Positions 2,757-19,682 of a stretch of 64,000 nt of DNA are shown piece by piece. The notes beneath the pieces were generated by a model. That model did not search any database and was not told where the DNA came from. It saw nothing but the letters and a program-made list of their open reading frames with translations. A program made the translations under genes and the position numbers. Every line of letters starts with the position of its first letter. Position 1 is the stretch's first letter. Location: the sequence record PV029745.1; one strand, written 5' to 3'.

Positions 2757-3278
2757 TTAACGTCTTGCCCAGTATTGCAAACTATATCCAAGACCTGGAT
2801 TACGGGGAGCGTTAGTTACACCTTTCTGACAGGAAATGAATCGCCATTTGATCGGATCAATGTATTCTTCAAACTTAGCAATTTCAGTTACGTCGTCGGA
2901 AGAACAATCAATGTCCATATCCACAACCGTGCGATAGAACTCACTGCAACGAGAGAGACCATCTTTAAATAGTCGTTCTCCACCAATGATAAAAACTTTC
3001 TTTTCATTTTGAGATAATTCCAATGCTTCATCTAGAGATTTAACATGGATATACCCATCACCTTTCAAATTGCCATTAGAAGATAGAACGTAGTTAGTAC
3101 GACCTGGAAGAGGTTTATTACCAAGAGACTCCCAGGTCTTTCGTCCCATTATAACCGCATGTCCCAAAGTCTTCTCTTTGAACCATTTAAAATCTTCAGG
3201 GATATGCCATGGGATATTTCCATTGATTCCAATAATGCCATTGGTAGACACAGCAAAAATCATTGCTAAAGTGGGCAT
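2757..3278 (-). CDS. folA: Dihydrofolate reductase
   Basis: IGINGNIPWHIPEDFKWFK, VIMGRKTW, PLPGRTN and FIIGG DHFR motifs. Confidence 0.96.
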   Translation of the reverse strand: MPTLAMIFAVSTNGIIGINGNIPWHIPEDFKWFKEKTLGHAVIMGRKTWESLGNKPLPGRTNYVLSSNGNLKGDGYIHVKSLDEALELSQNEKKVFIIGGERLFKDGLSRCSEFYRTVVDMDIDCSSDDVTEIAKFEEYIDPIKWRFISCQKGVTNAPRNPGLGYSLQYWARR

Positions 3279-10767: not shown

Positions 10768-11775
10768 ATGTTTGAATTACTATTATCACCAGATATAGGC
10801 GAAGAGTTACCCTTGGTTGGATTTAATGAAATTATTAAATTAGGTGATCTACCTGTAGCGTTAGCTGGTACAATGTCATATGTGGATGGAAATACACTGT
10901 ATGTTGGATCTGGTCATCATACTGAAGGACAAACAGCTGCAACTGTGTTCAGACGTTTTACCATATCGCCATTTGCCGATATAGGTGCAACTGCTTCTGG
11001 AACATTCTTACCAGGGGTATCTTTAGGATTTGGGACATTACATAAGAATAACTTTATTGTTTATGGCGGTATTACTGGATGGAACTCGGCTGGTAATGGT
11101 GGTACGGGAACATCTAACTTTATACAACATTTTGATATAGCTACAGGCAATAGGGTTGAGCGATATAGTGGTCCCGTACCACTTTGGGGCACAGCCTCCG
11201 CATCAGATGGTAATGATCTTATTCTATGCGTTAACCCAATTGGCGTAAACGCAATGCGATTAAAACCATCAAGTAAGTCTTGGCTTAGCGGGCAAGACTA
11301 TTCAGGTGGTGCTCGTTCAGGTCAACAGTTATTCTTTTATAATGGTTACTTTTACCATTTTGGTGGTTGGGATAATACAAAGAACATACCTAATCTTGAA
11401 GTTTATCGATATAATGCAACTACCTTAATATGGGAGCAAACACCTTGGATGATTATACCTGCTGATAAAGGAACAATCTGGCAAGGTAATGGTTATGTAG
11501 ATGGGGACTATTTTAATTACCTTAACGCTGTTGATGTCGGCGGTGTAACTAAAATGTTTGCACAGCGTTTTAATATTAGGCGCCGGAAATGGGCTGAACC
11601 ATTTGAACTAGGTATTGGATTCCTTAATATTTCATCTATAGCCAAAGGTCCAGATAATAGCATGATCATTGCAGGTGGATCTAAAATGCCAGTTGGTGGT
11701 GGAGCATATATGTTAAAAAGCCAATTGTTATCGGGTATCTATCAGGTAAAACTAGCACCATTAGCCATTGATTAA
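10768..11775 (+). CDS. Kelch-like beta-propeller protein 1
   Basis: Repeated blades with GG dipeptide and downstream Y/W (LYVGSG, FIVYGG, FYHFGG, MIIAGG). Confidence 0.75.
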   Translation: MFELLLSPDIGEELPLVGFNEIIKLGDLPVALAGTMSYVDGNTLYVGSGHHTEGQTAATVFRRFTISPFADIGATASGTFLPGVSLGFGTLHKNNFIVYGGITGWNSAGNGGTGTSNFIQHFDIATGNRVERYSGPVPLWGTASASDGNDLILCVNPIGVNAMRLKPSSKSWLSGQDYSGGARSGQQLFFYNGYFYHFGGWDNTKNIPNLEVYRYNATTLIWEQTPWMIIPADKGTIWQGNGYVDGDYFNYLNAVDVGGVTKMFAQRFNIRRRKWAEPFELGIGFLNISSIAKGPDNSMIIAGGSKMPVGGGAYMLKSQLLSGIYQVKLAPLAID

Positions 11776-11849
11776 AATAATAATATTTATAATAAGGTTA
11801 ACTACACGTTATTTACATAATGTCATAAAAAATAAATAATACTCAGATT

Positions 11850-11862
11850 GTAATAATATGTA
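11850..11862 (+). promoter_or_regulatory. Putative phage promoter for the tRNA-Asn locus
   Basis: GTAATAATATGTA; matches GTAATGATATGTA (9203) and GTAATACTATGTA (14699). Confidence 0.55.
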
Positions 11863-11924
11863 GTGAAATACTGTAATTCAGTTACTTGTGATTTTTCTAC
11901 AAGAAAGAAGTTGTTAGTAATTCT

Positions 11925-11951
11925 TCCGCGATAGCTCAGTCGGTAGAGCAA
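11925..11951 (+). pseudogene. 5' half of a split tRNA-Asn gene
   Basis: TCCGCGA-TAGCTCAGTCGGTAGAGC-AA: acceptor 5' strand plus D arm, complementary to TCGCGGA at 12731-12737; no anticodon arm follows. Confidence 0.85.
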
Positions 11952-11969
11952 GCGATTGGATAGTTTTCT

Positions 11970-12056
11970 TGGTAAGTACCCGAGCGGTAGCAGGGGGCGG
12001 ACTGTTAATCCGTTGGCGAAAGCCCATCGTAGGTTCGAATCCTACCTTACCAGCCA
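11970..12056 (+). tRNA. tRNA-Asn (anticodon GTT) with long variable arm
   Basis: TGGTAAG/CTTACCA acceptor, G73+CCA, GCGGA-CTGTTAA-TCCGT, V arm GGC-GAAA-GCC, GTAGG-TTCGAAT-CCTAC. Confidence 0.9.
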
Positions 12057-12061
12057 ATTTC

Positions 12062-12085
12062 AAAGAGTAGCTCCGGCTACTCTTT
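12062..12085 (+). terminator. Terminator-like hairpin after the inner tRNA-Asn
   Basis: AAAGAGTAGC-tccg-GCTACTCTTT; near-duplicate of the hairpin at 12751. Confidence 0.65.
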
Positions 12086-12137
12086 ATTCCGTCACATAGA
12101 TCGAACTAGCGATCTATTTATATATCCTAGGTTCGAT

Positions 12138-12695
12138 ATGAAAGAGAAAATAATTAACGGCTATAGGGCATTATATTTACCCGAACATCGTCAAGCCATA
12201 GCTAACCCTAAAATGTTTGGATGGGTTTACGAACATCGAGTGGTTGGAGAAGACACATTAGGTAGACCACTTTACGATGACGAGGAAGTTCATCATCTGG
12301 ATGAGAATAAGCTTAACAACCATCCAGAGAACTTATTGATTCTCCCTCAGTCACAACACATGAAGTTACATGGTTGGATGAAACGGCTCGGTATTGATCC
12401 TAGGAACTATCCAACTAAGCTTTGTGCTGGCTGCGGTATTGTCATTAGTCACCGACTGATAACATTCTGTAGCCCCGAGTGTTCAGCCAAAGGTCGTCGT
12501 AAGGTGGATCGACCATCCAAAGAACAACTTGCCCTCGATGTTACATTGCTATCACTTGTAAAAATAGGAGAGAAGTATGGAGTATCCGATAACGCTATTC
12601 GTAAATGGTGCCGAGCATACAAGATCAATATTCCGGCTAGGTTTATTAGGGTCGGTGCTAATGGGGGTATTAGCACCTTGGTCCCCACACAATAA
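12138..12695 (+). CDS. HNH homing endonuclease-like protein (HNH + Zn ribbon + HTH)
   Basis: YEHRVV...EEVHHLDENKLNNHPENL...HMKLH; CAGC...FCSPEC; KIGEKYGVSDNAIRKW helix-turn-helix. Confidence 0.9.
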   Translation: MKEKIINGYRALYLPEHRQAIANPKMFGWVYEHRVVGEDTLGRPLYDDEEVHHLDENKLNNHPENLLILPQSQHMKLHGWMKRLGIDPRNYPTKLCAGCGIVISHRLITFCSPECSAKGRRKVDRPSKEQLALDVTLLSLVKIGEKYGVSDNAIRKWCRAYKINIPARFIRVGANGGISTLVPTQ

Positions 12696-12707
12696 AAAAA
12701 AATATAC

Positions 12708-12741
12708 TGGGTCCCTGGTTCGAGTCCAGGTCGCGGAGCCA
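12708..12741 (+). pseudogene. 3' half of the split tRNA-Asn gene
   Basis: TGGGTC-CCTGG-TTCGAGT-CCAGG-TCGCGGA-G-CCA: variable loop, T arm, acceptor 3' strand. Confidence 0.85.
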
Positions 12742-12750
12742 AATTCAATT

Positions 12751-12776
12751 GAGTAGCCATTGGCTACTCTTTTATG
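12751..12776 (+). terminator. Intrinsic terminator
   Basis: GAGTAGCCA-t-TGGCTACTC-TTTTATG. Confidence 0.7.
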
Positions 12777-12825
12777 CCGTTAGTGGTTATCTTATGAATC
12801 ATTAATACTAACTGAGAGCACGCAC

Positions 12826-14682
12826 ATGTTCGAGATATTACTCAGTTCTGGTGCAATGGAGAGAGCTCCATATGTACCCTTTTATATGCGAACCAAGAAG
12901 GTAGCTGACCTTCCAGTGGGTATTGCAGGTCCAATCGTTGCAATGGATAACGATAACTTATATGTAGTTGGCGGTCAAGATTCTACTGGGGCTATCCGCT
13001 CTGCAACTGAAATATTTAAACTATCTGATATGTCGATGACTGTTGGTGGAAACCACGCTAGAACTATTTCCATCAATGGAGCAACTATTTATAATAATAG
13101 AATGCTAATACCAGGCGGCCAATTTTCTACTAATTTAGCTGGTCTTTTATCAACGACAGGTGCATTGAATTTACCTGGGTTAACTAGTGCAGTTGAGTTA
13201 ACGGGACGTTTACCACAGACGTCGTATGGGAATGCTGTATGTCAGCATAGAGGGGACATATATGTTTTACCCAGTTATAAAGCCGGATTCTATAAATTAA
13301 ATCCACTTACTGGCGCGACTCTTGAAAATTATCCAGGATTACCAAGTTTTGATGATGTCGGTGGTGGGATATTAGCAGGTATGTCAATTTTTGGACATGG
13401 AGATTATATCTATTGTTTGGGTGGATGGGCAAATAATCAGAACCTAAGAATACATCGATTTAATCTGATTTCCAAACAATGGGAATTATGGCAGACAATG
13501 GACCCTGCGTATCACCATGTATGGCATGGTGGTTTTATTGATGAGGAAGGTTACTATAACTATACCGGCTGGGGTAACCTCGGTCAAGGTAACAAAATAT
13601 ACCTCCATCGTTATAATCCAGTCAAAAAATCTTGGGCGCGCTCGTCGGATACCGGATTATCATATCGAAACATGTCGGGTGTTATTGGACTAAAAGATGA
13701 TATTTATATTGTCGGTGGTACATCTGAATCATTCTCTACTAATTGGACTAGCACAACAAATAAAATAAAAGAAATCTACAAGGTATCTCGTGCTCCCGAA
13801 AACTGGGAACCTGTCCCAGAGAAAACATGGGTAAGAAAAGCAGACATGCCTGGCGGTAGGGTGCAAGCAGCCGTAGCAAGTACTTATTCAGAACTGTTCG
13901 TTATGTTTGGTAGTGATGGTGCAGTAAAGAATACAAACTTGATTTACGATGTATTTACTGATACGTGGAAAGAAGGACCAGTTAAACCATCCGCACGTTA
14001 TCAATCGGCAGCCACAACTGTCGCCGACCAGATTCTTATTTTCTCTGGTAGTAACTATTCTCCAGACCTGTATTCTTATAACCATCTAGAAGACAAGTGG
14101 AGTGACAGTATATCTGAACCAAACGCACCCACATGGCGGACAAACCACTGCATGACATCTTTTGGTAGATATGCCTATCTTTTTGGTGATGATGGACGTA
14201 CCGATAGAGCTATTTATCGTTATAGTTTAGATGCTGCGGCTGGAAGCAAATGGTATAAATTACCTCAACTTGCTCCAGAAGGATTGGCTAGAGCGGCAAT
14301 GGTTATTGTGAATAATAAACTTTACATTGCCTGTGGTTGGATTAGTTCCAACACCATGACTAAAACCATTCGTGTTCTTGATTTGGTCGCTGGTACATGG
14401 TCTACCATATCTAACGTACCCGCCAGCTTTGTTGCTCGTGTAGGTTGTCTATTAGCTGCGATTGATAATAAACTTTACATAGGTGGTGGCGCTAGTCCAA
14501 GCACTGGATTGAATGATTTCTGGGAATATGATACAGTCAGTGGTGCGTGGACAAGACTCCCCGACATTCCTATAAACGGTGATGCTGCTATGATGGCTGC
14601 ATGTGCTGATACCTTATATATCGCTGGCGGTAATAGGCCAAACGGTGTGAAAGGTAATGAGCTCTACGCATATAGGCCATAA
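12826..14682 (+). CDS. Kelch-repeat protein 2 (probably two propellers)
   Basis: About 12 blades (LYVVGG, IYCLGG, IYIVGG, LYIACG, LYIGGG, LYIAGG) with W.....MP spacers. Confidence 0.88.
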   Translation: MFEILLSSGAMERAPYVPFYMRTKKVADLPVGIAGPIVAMDNDNLYVVGGQDSTGAIRSATEIFKLSDMSMTVGGNHARTISINGATIYNNRMLIPGGQFSTNLAGLLSTTGALNLPGLTSAVELTGRLPQTSYGNAVCQHRGDIYVLPSYKAGFYKLNPLTGATLENYPGLPSFDDVGGGILAGMSIFGHGDYIYCLGGWANNQNLRIHRFNLISKQWELWQTMDPAYHHVWHGGFIDEEGYYNYTGWGNLGQGNKIYLHRYNPVKKSWARSSDTGLSYRNMSGVIGLKDDIYIVGGTSESFSTNWTSTTNKIKEIYKVSRAPENWEPVPEKTWVRKADMPGGRVQAAVASTYSELFVMFGSDGAVKNTNLIYDVFTDTWKEGPVKPSARYQSAATTVADQILIFSGSNYSPDLYSYNHLEDKWSDSISEPNAPTWRTNHCMTSFGRYAYLFGDDGRTDRAIYRYSLDAAAGSKWYKLPQLAPEGLARAAMVIVNNKLYIACGWISSNTMTKTIRVLDLVAGTWSTISNVPASFVARVGCLLAAIDNKLYIGGGASPSTGLNDFWEYDTVSGAWTRLPDIPINGDAAMMAACADTLYIAGGNRPNGVKGNELYAYRP

Positions 14683-14728: not shown

Positions 14729-14817
14729 GGAGAGATAGGAAAATTGGTAACCCCAGCTGACTGTAAATCAGCCGTCCGTATCGGGCATTACTGGTTCGAG
14801 TCCAGTCCTCTCCACCA
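14729..14817 (+). tRNA. tRNA-Tyr (anticodon GTA)
   Basis: GCTGA-CTGTAAA-TCAGC, long V arm, ACTGG-TTCGAGT-CCAGT, CCA; one A-C mismatch at acceptor pair 7. Confidence 0.93.
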
Positions 14818-16652: not shown

Positions 16653-17591
16653 ATGTTTGAAGTTTTGTTAGGAATTGGGGAATATAAAAGTAAGCAAGGT
16701 TGGGTTCAGCTACAGGGACCCGATGTCGGAAGAAATCAGTCAACATCTGTTGTTGTAGGAGACAAACTTTATATCTTCGGTGGACGCCGTGCCACCACTA
16801 ATGCGTTTAACACGGTATCCGTCTATGACTTCATAGCAGACGAATGGAAAGAACTACCAGCTGGAGCGAACGTTAACCTACGTGCTGCTGGTGGTTTAGT
16901 TGGTAATAAATTTTACGTATTCGGTGGATATACAGGTTCCGCTGATACGAATACAATGGTAGAGTTTACTATTGATGGCGAAACTATCACCCCTGTAACT
17001 CGATCCAATGGTGGATTGGCTGTTCGTAATAGCCACTGCATGTCGGCTATTGATAATAAAGTGTATCTGTTTGGTGGGAACGGTGCACAGGGTATTATGT
17101 ATGAATTTAAAAGCTACAATACCGATAACTTTACAGTAGCTAATCTAACACCACCATACCAAATCCGTTATGCGTCTCTAACTAGTCATGATCGCCGTCT
17201 TTACACGCTCGGTGGATATGAAACCGCTAACACATCAGTTGCCTCATTTAGAAGTTATAATGTTGACAACAACACATGGACTGCCCACAAGAATGGTCTT
17301 GTAAATAGAAATAGACATTCTGCCGTAGCTCTTAATAATAAGATCTATGTATTCGGTGGTCAATCTGGTACGAGCTCTACTCCAAACACTATTAACAACG
17401 ATCATATTTTCAGTGTCTATGATATTGAAACCGATACATGGTCAAACATAATACTTCCTCCGGGTAAGATGCCCCCTACTAGATTCTATGCTAATATGGA
17501 AGTCTACGACGGTAAGATTTATTTATCTGGTGGTTACACGAATGGTGTGTACCACAATGATCTATGGGTATACGATCCAGAGAATCCATGA
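16653..17591 (+). CDS. Kelch-repeat protein 3 (single propeller)
   Basis: LYIFGG, FYVFGG, VYLFGG, LYTLGG, IYVFGG, IYLSGG: six canonical Kelch blades. Confidence 0.92.
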   Translation: MFEVLLGIGEYKSKQGWVQLQGPDVGRNQSTSVVVGDKLYIFGGRRATTNAFNTVSVYDFIADEWKELPAGANVNLRAAGGLVGNKFYVFGGYTGSADTNTMVEFTIDGETITPVTRSNGGLAVRNSHCMSAIDNKVYLFGGNGAQGIMYEFKSYNTDNFTVANLTPPYQIRYASLTSHDRRLYTLGGYETANTSVASFRSYNVDNNTWTAHKNGLVNRNRHSAVALNNKIYVFGGQSGTSSTPNTINNDHIFSVYDIETDTWSNIILPPGKMPPTRFYANMEVYDGKIYLSGGYTNGVYHNDLWVYDPENP

Positions 17592-17648: not shown

Positions 17649-17734
17649 GGGAACATAGGCGAATTGGTATAGCCAGCTGGTTTAGGTCCAGCCGTCGTAA
17701 GACACTGTGGGTTCGAGTCCCTCTGTTCCTACCA
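17649..17734 (+). tRNA. tRNA-Leu (anticodon TAG)
   Basis: GGGAACA/TGTTCCT acceptor, GCTGG-TTTAGGT-CCAGC, long V arm, T loop, CCA. Confidence 0.92.
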
Positions 17735-17768: not shown

Positions 17769-17899
17769 TTGCAAATTGTATGATTTAGTCTTTTGGTAAG
17801 TACCTTTAATGGGGGAGGCCTTAGACGGTAAGGGAGTAGGAACGTGAAGTTCTATACAGTCACCCCTCTGTAAACAGTCACTTTTCAATGGATAAAATT

Positions 17900-19468
17900 A
17901 TGTTTGAATCGTTGTTGTCAGTACTCATTAAGGTAACAGAAAATAAATTACCCGGTCCCTCTACCTTTGAATACGGTGATTCGACACTTGGTCTGTATGG
18001 TGAGTTAGCAAGTGATAAGTTTATAACTTACCCTCAGTTAAGAACACTTGTTGAACTCGATTCCATTGGTAGCATAAATACCGATGCCGGCTGGATTAAG
18101 GTATCTAGGAATAATGTTGTCATGTATTATTCAAAGACAGCTATTCTCCGATCCATTAGTCCAAACCAACTTGATACCGCTGGTTTAATAGATGGTAGTA
18201 AAGTTATTGTAATTGACGGAAATATGTTTAAAGTCCGTCTTATGAATGCAGGTGAAAATCCTTATTCTGATATTACTACCCAAGGTAATGAAGGTTCCGA
18301 GTTATGGGATATTTTTGGTAACGTTACAACCAAAGGAAGCTGGGCGAAATATACAGATTCTCAACTTATAGGTGCTGAAGGCGGTAGTTATAGCTGGGCG
18401 GCTAATAGAAATACAAATGGTAATTATCTACAGTTCTCGCCTTCGTCTACTCATCCCCAGGCAAAGAATGGAGTTTATGTTTACGACGGACACCCACCGA
18501 CGGAAGCTACTAATTATAGAGGATGGCGTCCAGTACTAGAATATATTCCACCTAAGGAACTTAAAGGTTTATCGTCTGTACTATCGACAGTAAATCCACC
18601 ACCACAACGTGGGATGCCAGTGCTTGCATATGACTCGGATAACAATGATATCTATATGGCTTGTGGATATACAACTGGACCAACTGCTTTCATGTCCGAC
18701 CTACATCGATTAGACATGGATACAAAAACATGGACTAAGTTACCATCGGTTGTGCCATTCCAAGGTGAAACCACTACCACGAATATGGTTTACAGTAACG
18801 GTAAATTAATTCTTCATGGTAACCCATTGTCAACTGGGCCAACTATTTATATTTACACCATAGCTACTGATACCTGGGAAACTAAAAAGCTCGCGGCTAT
18901 TCCAGGTTTGGTTGACGCTTACTACATCGAACGTACAGCCAGTATAGTTAAAGATGACATACTCTATATTGTCGGTGGTTTCTCTGGTCGAAACGATAAG
19001 ATCCATAAGAGTATTATAACGGTTGATCTAACCTCCTACTCAATCGATCTTATTGAAAATATTCTACCATTTGAGGCTTGGCATCACGATCTTGGATTTA
19101 ATGATAATAACGAATTAGTTATTGTTGCATCTCAAGGTAGATTATCTATTGGTGGAACAAATATCACACCAACGGACTATATAAAAATTAGTCCCGATTT
19201 TAGTGCCGCTGAGACCATCCCTTTAAATGCACCGGCTAATAAGTATTCGACGTATAGGTCTATTGTTTTCGGCAACAATATCTATATTACGAATAATACT
19301 ACAACACAGTTAGCATTGGTACAACTTAATAAAGAACCAGAGCTAATCGGAGATCCTTTCCCTACAATTAGGTCGTATGAAGAAATGGTGATTACATCAG
19401 CTGGTGTATATAGATTCAGCGGTGATGTTTCTAAAACAGCACCTGTAGTCGAATACGAAATTAAATAA
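17900..19468 (+). CDS. phiKZ gp131-like virion structural domain fused to a Kelch-like propeller
   Basis: Starts MFESLLS; PGP...GDSTLGLYGEL...GWIK...FKVRLM...GWRPVLE domain, then IYMACG / LYIVGG blades. Confidence 0.75.
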   Translation: MFESLLSVLIKVTENKLPGPSTFEYGDSTLGLYGELASDKFITYPQLRTLVELDSIGSINTDAGWIKVSRNNVVMYYSKTAILRSISPNQLDTAGLIDGSKVIVIDGNMFKVRLMNAGENPYSDITTQGNEGSELWDIFGNVTTKGSWAKYTDSQLIGAEGGSYSWAANRNTNGNYLQFSPSSTHPQAKNGVYVYDGHPPTEATNYRGWRPVLEYIPPKELKGLSSVLSTVNPPPQRGMPVLAYDSDNNDIYMACGYTTGPTAFMSDLHRLDMDTKTWTKLPSVVPFQGETTTTNMVYSNGKLILHGNPLSTGPTIYIYTIATDTWETKKLAAIPGLVDAYYIERTASIVKDDILYIVGGFSGRNDKIHKSIITVDLTSYSIDLIENILPFEAWHHDLGFNDNNELVIVASQGRLSIGGTNITPTDYIKISPDFSAAETIPLNAPANKYSTYRSIVFGNNIYITNNTTTQLALVQLNKEPELIGDPFPTIRSYEEMVITSAGVYRFSGDVSKTAPVVEYEIK

Positions 19469-19507: not shown

Positions 19508-19585
<78 letters not shown>

Positions 19586-19605
19586 GTTTAAGTAGTTTAA
19601 AATTA

Positions 19606-19682
19606 GGCTCCATAGTTCAGTTGGTTAGAATGCTTGCCTGTCACGCAAGAGGTCGCCGGTTCAAGTCCGGCTGGAGTCGCCA
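19606..19682 (+). tRNA. tRNA-Asp (anticodon GTC)
   Basis: GGCTCCA/TGGAGTC acceptor, CTTGC-CTGTCAC-GCAAG, G73+CCA. Confidence 0.96.

Follow-up and report, generated by a model that had tools for sequence, protein, structure and literature searches.

A long-variable-arm tRNA-Asn of phiKZ-like phages as the probable replacement cargo of an HNH homing-endonuclease cassette

Pseudomonas phage phiHQ, a jumbo phage of the phiKZ group (Chimalliviridae), encodes an 87-nt tRNA-Asn with the anticodon GUU and a long variable arm. The gene occupies positions 11970-12056 of the stretch of DNA analyzed here, namely 64,000 nt of sequence record PV029745.1, referred to below as the window. From comparisons among phage sequences, we consider it probable that this RNA is the working phage tRNA for asparagine, and that it is carried as a replacement by a homing-endonuclease cassette. 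In phiKZ-like phages the long-arm tRNA lies, together with a free-standing HNH homing-endonuclease gene, inside an ordinary, class I tRNA-Asn gene; the insertion would put the class I tRNA-Asn out of use, and the long-arm tRNA would supply the lost function.

The ordinary class I tRNA-Asn gene spans positions 11925-12741 of the window, on the plus strand, as do all features of this locus given below. It is interrupted once, by an insertion of about 0.75 kb that contains the long-arm tRNA, two hairpins and an HNH open reading frame (ORF). One piece of the class I gene lies just upstream of the long-arm tRNA and the other just downstream of the HNH ORF. Neither piece was called by ARAGORN or Rfam in the window; both were identified by matching them separately to the intact 76-nt tRNA-Asn gene of phage 30-1. 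The same 5' and 3' pieces flank the tRNA and the HNH gene in phages PA1C, BRkr and phiKZ. In phiKZ, the two pieces taken together cover all of the class I gene. In the window lineage (phiHQ, PA1C and BRkr), about half a dozen class I bases next to the insertion are missing or changed, and the class I gene there is thus a decaying remnant. In phage 30-1, the gene is uninterrupted at the corresponding place, with neither the long-arm tRNA nor the HNH gene, and the flanks are near-identical to those of phiKZ. Phages PA7 and SL2 likewise lack the long-arm tRNA.

The distribution of the insertion was assessed in 47 phiKZ-clade records gathered by a megablast search. In 24 of these the class I gene is uninterrupted and carries neither insert, with flanks otherwise 97-100% identical; about 10 have the insert together with both class I pieces, and about 6 have the 5' piece only (OMKO1, T2P, U1B, U5, phi9_PA9 and kmuB). 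The search did not reach phiHQ, phiLBG22, PA1C and BRkr, which are four further occupied genomes. Close relatives therefore differ by presence or absence of the insertion at one site, and every occupied genome examined has an interrupted class I gene, i.e., the occupied allele does not retain the intact empty-site sequence; both features are those of a homing cassette. At the insertion locus, the class I copy of phiKZ and of phage 30-1 (L003:4035-4110; 3' piece in L001) has an unusual T loop, TTCTAAC, compared with TTCGAGT in the other copy, and it may have been a weaker gene already before the insertion.

A second class I tRNA-Asn locus is polymorphic as well. In phages of the OMKO1 type, the long-arm tRNA (L158:1801-1887 in OMKO1) is found at this other locus, after tRNA-Asp and without an HNH gene. 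It is preceded by the class I 5' piece and followed by the usual terminator of the class I gene, with no 3' piece. The presence/absence polymorphism of the long-arm tRNA thus extends to two class I loci. The same terminator can be recognized in the window: a 10-bp hairpin just after the long-arm tRNA (12062-12085) is homologous to the terminator that follows the intact class I tRNA-Asn in phiKZ and OMKO1. Beyond the end of the interrupted class I gene lies a further terminator-like hairpin (12751-12769), which is likewise homologous to the terminator of the intact gene. A second hairpin with a T-rich tail, upstream of the HNH start (12096-12117), is also terminator-like and is conserved in phiKZ. 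Outside this group, the pairing of tRNA and HNH gene recurs in phage Psa21, where a 5' remnant, located upstream, is all that is left of a class I tRNA, and in a 310-kb viral contig.

The HNH ORF (12138-12695) encodes a predicted homing-type nuclease of 185 residues. Its translation comprises a His-Asn-His motif, followed by a Cys4 cluster and a conserved C-terminal region. The protein matches HNH_3 (Pfam PF13392; E 1.3e-10), with the catalytic motif at residues 31-75, and over its full length PHROG 15471, 'HNH endonuclease' (E 5.5e-53); it is 88.6% identical to gp296 of phiKZ. Pfam gave no match in the C-terminal region, and a PDB sequence search with the protein gave none at E up to 1. Relatives were gathered by means of six conserved peptides, and 80 loci were kept (IMG/VR loci L009-L088). 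In 76 of the 80, tRNA genes lie within 1.5 kb, for a total of 353 tRNAs, which shows that this HNH family lives in tRNA gene clusters. The C-terminal region (residues 95-170, approximately) appears especially tied to phage tRNA arrays.

These observations suggest how the cassette might spread. The HNH enzyme would cut uninterrupted class I tRNA-Asn genes, and when the cut is repaired from an occupied copy, one homology arm would be the 5' piece of the class I gene. If the class I 3' piece were the other arm, the tRNA and the HNH gene would be copied together; if instead it were the terminator shared by the two tRNA genes, the tRNA alone would be copied, as may have occurred in OMKO1. Because the hairpin at 12062-12085 is homologous to the class I terminator, the OMKO1 state fits a short conversion tract delimited by the 5' piece and that terminator. 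The long-arm gene, with its different stems and its insertion, is presumably not a target of the HNH enzyme, since it persists beside it. An earlier note on this DNA, made from the letters of the window, had linked the tRNA to the adjacent HNH gene and had suggested that its unusual body might evade this nuclease, host tRNA-targeting nucleases, or both. The link is real, in that both genes sit within one interrupted class I tRNA-Asn gene, which makes the long-arm gene the version that coexists with the nuclease. The idea that the tRNA evades the adjacent HNH nuclease gains support, in a form both stronger than the original proposal and different from it.

The closest known counterpart is SegB, a free-standing GIY-YIG homing endonuclease encoded in the tRNA cluster of T4, which recognizes a tRNA gene motif and spreads itself along with neighboring tRNA genes (PMC2330249; PMC13096335). 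In both systems a nuclease gene lies among phage tRNA genes, and only some of the related phages have it. However, the phiKZ-like nuclease belongs to the HNH type (HNH_3, PHROG 15471) rather than GIY-YIG; its insert sits inside a tRNA gene, inactivating that gene; and its cargo is a structurally different isoacceptor that would replace the lost function. The HNH genes F-TflI, II and IV of T5 are also located among tRNA genes.

An alternative account of the insertion is that the 0.75-kb insert self-splices, with the HNH protein as its homing enzyme, such that production of the class I tRNA continues, with the long-arm tRNA as an embedded extra. Several points would be in line with splicing: HNH enzymes are often encoded by group I introns of phages, the insert here lies within a tRNA gene, and the phiKZ pieces do add up to an intact class I gene. 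However, an Rfam scan of positions 11850-12850, at E up to 10, returned only the tRNA and one chance match on the opposite strand, and no group I or group II intron. In addition, the pieces in phiHQ, PA1C and BRkr do not make a whole class I gene; the insert holds a complete tRNA-Asn of its own as well as a terminator hairpin; and OMKO1 has the 5' piece and the long-arm tRNA but neither the 3' piece nor the HNH gene. On the strength of the missing intron match and the incomplete pieces in the window lineage, we disfavor a self-splicing intron, and regard it as extremely improbable.

We now turn to the replacement tRNA itself, which has every part of a tRNA plus one extra arm. ARAGORN calls a tRNA-Asn (gtt) at 11970-12056, and positions 11970-12053 match the Rfam tRNA family RF00005 with 54.2 bits (E 6.9e-9), well above the gathering score of 29. 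The minimum-free-energy structure computed with RNAfold, at -31.7 kcal/mol, is a cloverleaf with an additional hairpin, i.e., a five-armed molecule. By score and fold, this RNA is thus a member of the tRNA family. The acceptor stem has 7 bp (11970-11976 with 12046-12052), including the U1-A72 pair formed by T 11970 and A 12052. The D arm (11979-11995) is of class II style, with a 3-bp stem and an 11-nt loop. The anticodon arm (11997-12013) presents the anticodon GTT (12004-12006), which reads AAC and AAU. The variable region (12014-12028) has 15 nt and contains a GGC/GCC stem (12015-12017 with 12022-12024) closed by a GAAA loop (12018-12021), as indicated by the sequence, the fold and the covariation described below. 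The T arm (12029-12045) is standard, and is followed, after the acceptor strand, by G73 (12053) and an encoded CCA (12054-12056). On these anatomical points, namely the Asn anticodon arm, G73, the class II-style D arm and the GAAA-capped variable arm, the earlier note was correct in every detail according to the sequence, ARAGORN, Rfam and RNAfold.

The 11-nt D loop and the 15-nt variable region are not those of class I; for comparison, in the class I tRNA-Asn of phage 30-1 the D loop measures 8 nt and the variable loop 5 nt. A long variable arm with a stem is present, as in class II, but a Leu, Ser or Tyr anticodon is not, and neither is the A73 of Leu and Tyr tRNAs. The gene is annotated as tRNA-Asn in both phiHQ and phiKZ; the phiKZ copy has 89 nt and adjoins the HNH gene gp296. 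The phiHQ and phiKZ versions differ at four positions, all unpaired. Across 22 phiKZ-like records the tRNA is 95-100% identical, in comparison with about 83% overall for a 701-base query spanning the tRNA and its flanks (11700-12400); phiHQ matches this query with 100% identity and at identical coordinates. Differences confined to unpaired positions, and better conservation of the tRNA than of its flanks, are the signature of a gene under selection.

The long-arm tRNA-Asn is not peculiar to phiKZ-like phages. A BLAST search with the 87-nt gene as query identified long tRNA-Asn genes in phages unrelated to this group, namely in the T5-like Tequintavirus and relatives, in the Novosibvirus Stubb and in the T4-like Serratia phage CHI14; these are 83-85 nt in length and share the GAAA-capped hairpin with the window tRNA. 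The phage UAVern also carries one. A pattern anchored on the end of the anticodon loop, GAAAG and the start of the T arm was then used to scan the viral contigs of IMG/VR, and matched 59 stretches. ARAGORN called 58 of them, on 58 contigs, tRNA-Asn(gtt), with 38 distinct sequences whose acceptor, D and T arms are very different. The same scan of 185,579 bacterial and archaeal species, with one genome each, gave only 7 stretches; six were rejected as not being long-arm tRNA-Asn genes. The single genuine case (L154:2642-2729) lies in a tight, phage-like run of seven tRNA genes on a contig of a Bacteriovoracales metagenome-assembled genome, and this contig may be that of a phage or prophage. The long-arm tRNA-Asn is thus a family confined almost wholly to phages. 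The notion of a singular chimera is not borne out, given how common the family is in T5-like, T4-like, Novosibvirus, phiKZ-like, UAVern and many metagenomic phages; the earlier note had itself named commonness in phages as an outcome that would count against its proposal. In the literature that we searched, we found no description of a long variable arm on a phage tRNA-Asn.

The features that matter for decoding are shared throughout the family. The anticodon is GUU in all 58 members, and base 73 is G in all 39 distinct sequences; the 1-72 pair is U1-A72 in 28 of these, G1-C72 in 10 and A1-U72 in 1. The variable stem consists of 2-5 contiguous pairs, mostly 3-4, and four or five pair types are seen at the second pair and also at the third, i.e., these have undergone compensatory changes. 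The mean stem length is 3.36 contiguous pairs, versus 1.75 +/- 0.16 when the 3' strands are redistributed among the 39 sequences (maximum 2.51 in 1000 shuffles). Covariation was evaluated by directly counting the pairs that flank the GAAA loop, since an alignment made with MAFFT and RNAalifold left the variable arm out of register. Relatives with a GCAA or GGAA loop occur beyond the GAAA pattern. Within the stretch of the array examined, the long-arm gene is the only tRNA-Asn in 54 of the 58 loci, as it is in the CHI14 and OMKO1 regions and in the 64-kb phiHQ window. Some metagenomic phage arrays have more than one tRNA-Asn (L102:13362-13447 and 13460-13547; L141:2343-2425, 2453-2525 and 2962-3055); among such arrays are some with two long-arm genes in tandem, one having a GCAA loop, and others in which a long-arm gene stands beside a class I tRNA-Asn.

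In bacterial tRNAs, a long variable arm is regarded as the mark of the isotypes Leu, Ser, Tyr or selenocysteine (Sec). The window tRNA nonetheless carries the complete set of bacterial tRNA-Asn elements, namely GUU, G73 and U1-A72. In E. coli, the anticodon and G73 suffice to transfer Asn identity to another tRNA, and G73 is an antideterminant for the tyrosyl- and leucyl-tRNA synthetases, TyrRS and LeuRS (PMC9976931). Charging with Tyr or Leu is therefore unlikely, and so is the suggestion in the earlier note that TyrRS might act on this tRNA. The 1-72 pair is informative in a different manner. Hosts in the Enterobacterales charge tRNA-Asn directly, and the lineages that infect them have G1-C72 in their long-arm tRNA-Asn; all three Pseudomonas phage lineages with the long-arm type (phiKZ-like, Psa21 and UAVern) have U1-A72. 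In P. aeruginosa, Asn-tRNA is made indirectly, through an aspartyl-tRNA synthetase of the non-discriminating type (ND-AspRS) together with GatCAB (PMC2330236), and for bacterial GatCAB the U1-A72 pair promotes amidation while G1-C72 prevents it (PMC1635274; PMC2811023). That is, the 1-72 pair of the long-arm tRNA-Asn follows the Asn pathway of the host. Taken together, the family-wide GUU and G73, the host-matched 1-72 pair and the usual standing of the gene as the only tRNA-Asn in the array stretch argue that the family decodes Asn as Asn, rather than as Ser or Tyr. In Pseudomonas, charging with Asn would probably proceed via ND-AspRS and GatCAB.

The phage also has a reason to carry a tRNA-Asn. 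Its host is G+C-rich, and in the long ORFs of the window, whose GC content is 43%, Asn accounts for 6.1% of codons, half of which are AAT; the reason is this codon demand. As a class, the tRNAs of phiKZ are expressed and co-sediment with 30S subunits (PMC8545117).

Could the long-arm tRNA instead serve to recode? The seryl-tRNA synthetase (SerRS) might read the variable arm and G73, such that Asn codons would partly be read as Ser; or, in Pseudomonas, Asp might remain on the tRNA if GatCAB rejected the enlarged D loop. Serine identity is indeed conferred by the variable arm and G73, with the anticodon ignored (PMC9976931); the nematode nev-tRNAs, of class II with foreign anticodons, can be charged according to their body (PMC3333845); and an enlarged D loop could hinder GatCAB (PMC1635274). 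Against recoding, the tRNA-Asn set (GUU, G73 and mostly U1-A72) is conserved in the 39 distinct members, with a 1-72 pair that tracks the host pathway, and the gene is usually without another tRNA-Asn in the array stretch. The variable arm, mostly of 3-4 bp, is also shorter than in phage tRNA-Ser: at the same loci, whole long-arm tRNA-Asn molecules have 83-89 nt, versus 85-94 nt for tRNA-Ser. Finally, a bulk change from Asn to Ser at 6% of codons would be costly. We thus consider recoding very unlikely, and with it, given the conserved tRNA-Asn set and the host-matched 1-72 pair, the chimera that mistranslates Asn codons envisaged in the earlier note.

The nev-tRNAs, together with the bacterial allo-tRNAs (PMC3333845; PMC7609411), resemble the long-arm tRNA-Asn in that a long variable arm is combined with a class I-type anticodon. 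Those tRNAs, however, are charged by virtue of their body, with Leu, Ser or Ala, and they bring about or allow recoding. In the long-arm tRNA-Asn the elements at the acceptor end match the anticodon, and the molecule is normally the sole Asn decoder seen in the array.

Several observations weigh against a cassette that delivers a working tRNA-Asn. First, an extra D-loop nucleotide, as found on tRNA-Asp, is an antideterminant for bacterial GatCAB (PMC1635274), and the D loop of the phiKZ branch has 11 nt, versus 8 in the class I copy; because the enlarged loop resembles this antideterminant, efficient formation of Asn in Pseudomonas is not assured. Second, G73 and a hairpin in the variable arm are the features that SerRS reads regardless of the anticodon. 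Third, the tRNA and terminator occur without the HNH gene in a Psa21-like contig, and the long-arm tRNA does so in most other phages, from which it follows that tRNA and nuclease are separable. Fourth, long class-I-type tRNAs are not significantly enriched beside HNH-family ORFs (8 of 60 neighbors, versus 17 of 219 others; p = 0.20); a link between the extra arm and HNH genes is thus not supported.

The origin of the long-arm tRNA was addressed through pairwise comparisons. The window tRNA shares 73-78% identity with other long-arm Asn tRNAs, 72-74% with the class I tRNAs for Asn and Thr, but only 60-67% with the Tyr and Leu tRNAs of the window itself. It is thus no nearer to the latter two than to class I tRNAs, and descent from one of the Tyr, Leu or Ser tRNAs that the phage itself encodes was rejected, as the pairwise identities give it no support. 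The D arm is class I-like (4 bp, with a loop of 7-8 nt) in the members from enterobacterial phages, and class II-like in the Pseudomonas jumbo-phage branch. Among 1,109 phage tRNAs, the nearest non-Asn D arms are those of Thr, Lys, Ser and Tyr tRNAs, at an edit distance of 4-5. The style of the D arm is that of class II, yet it bears only a distant likeness to any Tyr or Ser D arm in that set. A blastn comparison with host tRNA-Asn from E. coli gave no match, which is uninformative at so short a query length. The simplest reading is that a tRNA-Asn gained a hairpin, and that the D arm was later remodeled in one branch; an origin by anticodon change in a tRNA for Tyr or Ser is less likely.

Compared with bacterial class II tRNAs (Leu, Ser, Tyr and Sec), the long-arm tRNA-Asn has in common the hairpin in the variable region, together with a D arm that in the phiKZ branch combines a 3-bp stem and a large loop; with tRNA-Ser it also shares G73. 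It differs from them in its GUU anticodon, in the combination of U1-A72 and G73, in its shorter arm, mostly of 3-4 bp, and in having no special similarity to the phage's own Tyr or Leu tRNAs. The locus joins a tRNA-Asn of class II-like architecture to a candidate homing cassette of the tRNA-cluster type, whose cargo would stand in for the interrupted gene; each is a variant on a known kind.

What the extra arm does is a separate question. It might do nothing, i.e., the hairpin might be a tolerated insertion with no adaptive role in a successful tRNA-Asn lineage that spreads horizontally. Engineered tRNAs do tolerate hairpins in the variable arm (PMC7590224), and about 9% (25 of 279) of the class-I-type tRNAs in the phage arrays examined are at least 80 nt long, which suggests that phage tRNAs are generally permissive. 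However, the stem is kept through compensatory changes; the GAAA-loop form comes back on acceptor, D and T arms that differ greatly, and the relatives outside that pattern carry the GCAA or GGAA loops mentioned above; and long-arm tRNA-Asn is virtually absent from cellular genomes. A neutral quirk is therefore possible, though rather doubtful.

Long class-I-type tRNAs of other isotypes are found in the same kind of arrays. Most have a short stem with a GNRA loop, and they include tRNAs for Trp, Thr, Ile(UAU), Val, Glu, Cys and Met, as well as amber suppressors. Examples with GNRA caps are L019:1786-1870 (Trp), L046:1761-1845 (Trp), L024:761-842 (Thr), L054:1786-1870 (Cys), L093:4406-4492 (Thr) and the 90-nt tRNA-Lys of CcrColossus (L006:1500-1589).

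A more specific role for the arm would be in counter-defense. Here, the extra arm, together with the altered D arm of this branch, would make the tRNA a poor substrate for the tRNA-cutting defense nucleases of the host, so that the phage could continue to read Asn codons once the host tRNA-Asn had been destroyed. Such a role would complement the replacement cassette, not supplant it. Phage anti-defense tRNAs are documented, namely the T5 tRNA-Lys, tRNA-Thr and tRNA-Asn against AriB of PARIS, and phage tRNA-Tyr against Retron-Eco7 and Septu (PMC11464382; bioRxiv 10.1101/2025.02.04.636281; PMC11555353; PMC13096335). Like those, the long-arm tRNA-Asn is a phage copy of a tRNA that host defenses cut, tRNA-Asn(GUU) being a known target; in contrast, the known examples escape because bases at the cleavage site are changed or because the tRNA is overexpressed, and addition of a variable arm is not among the routes described.

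AriB cuts the tRNA-Lys, tRNA-Thr and tRNA-Asn of E. coli in the anticodon stem, and in a model its dimer extends from this stem as far as the D loop. The variable region and the D loop are where the long-arm tRNA departs from class I. From U36 to C41, the sequence of the long-arm tRNA is the same as the AriB cleavage site of E. coli tRNA-Asn, such that any escape would have to come from shape. Also consistent with counter-defense, the isotypes that most often have long-arm versions in phage arrays are Asn, then Thr, Ile, Trp and Lys; the overlap with the AriB targets is only partial, however, and Trp, Cys and Val occur too. A further difficulty is that T5 itself has a 78-nt class I tRNA-Asn, and the PARIS rescue data thus do not apply to the long-arm type; for this reason we rejected T5 as an experimental proxy. 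Nor is a defense that targets tRNA-Asn documented here for Pseudomonas. Evasion of host tRNA nucleases, as raised in the earlier note, is plausible, but on balance we judge an anti-defense function of the arm to be unlikely. The T5 tRNA-Asn (L157:5453-5530), whose anticodon stem pairs poorly, differs from the long-arm type that many T5-like phages have.

Joining the two ideas leads to a bolder proposal, on which we would not place much weight: in phiKZ-like phages, the HNH homing endonuclease would actively swap a vulnerable, ordinary tRNA-Asn for a phage-specific version shielded from nucleases. If so, the cassette would be a selfish element earning its keep through the anti-defense upgrade of a tRNA that it brings, and the mini-arms of phage tRNAs for Thr, Lys, Ile and Trp would represent the shielding strategy in its general form.

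These results have implications beyond phiHQ. The long-arm tRNA-Asn constitutes a conserved Asn exception to the rule that long arms belong to Leu, Ser, Tyr and Sec tRNAs, and it is found in well-studied phages, including phiKZ, OMKO1 and many T5-like and T4-like phages; it thus bears on the isotype models used in tRNA annotation. How the asparaginyl-tRNA synthetase (AsnRS), ND-AspRS, GatCAB and SerRS treat the long-arm body is a directly answerable question of tRNA identity, and the family is relevant to the role of tRNAs as targets of phage defense. The nesting is itself of interest, since the proposed homing element would make good the damage it causes by carrying a different version of the destroyed gene, and not by splicing.

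The surroundings of the interrupted gene also vary among relatives. Large Kelch-repeat (beta-propeller) proteins are encoded among the tRNA genes of the window, at 12826-14682, 16653-17591 and 17888-19468, and more weakly at 10768-11775; they appear to be paralogous members of the family of gp298, the phiKZ 'virion structural protein', which would then have expanded in the window lineage relative to phiKZ. The tRNA genes at 14729-14817, 17649-17734 and 19508-19682 set the window apart from the phiKZ region examined: it has an extra tRNA-Tyr and an extra tRNA-Leu(tag), and its tRNA-Asp adjoins a tRNA-Thr, not a tRNA-Asn. In PA1C (L089), about 210 bases in addition to those of the window are present between the gp298 homologue and the interrupted gene.

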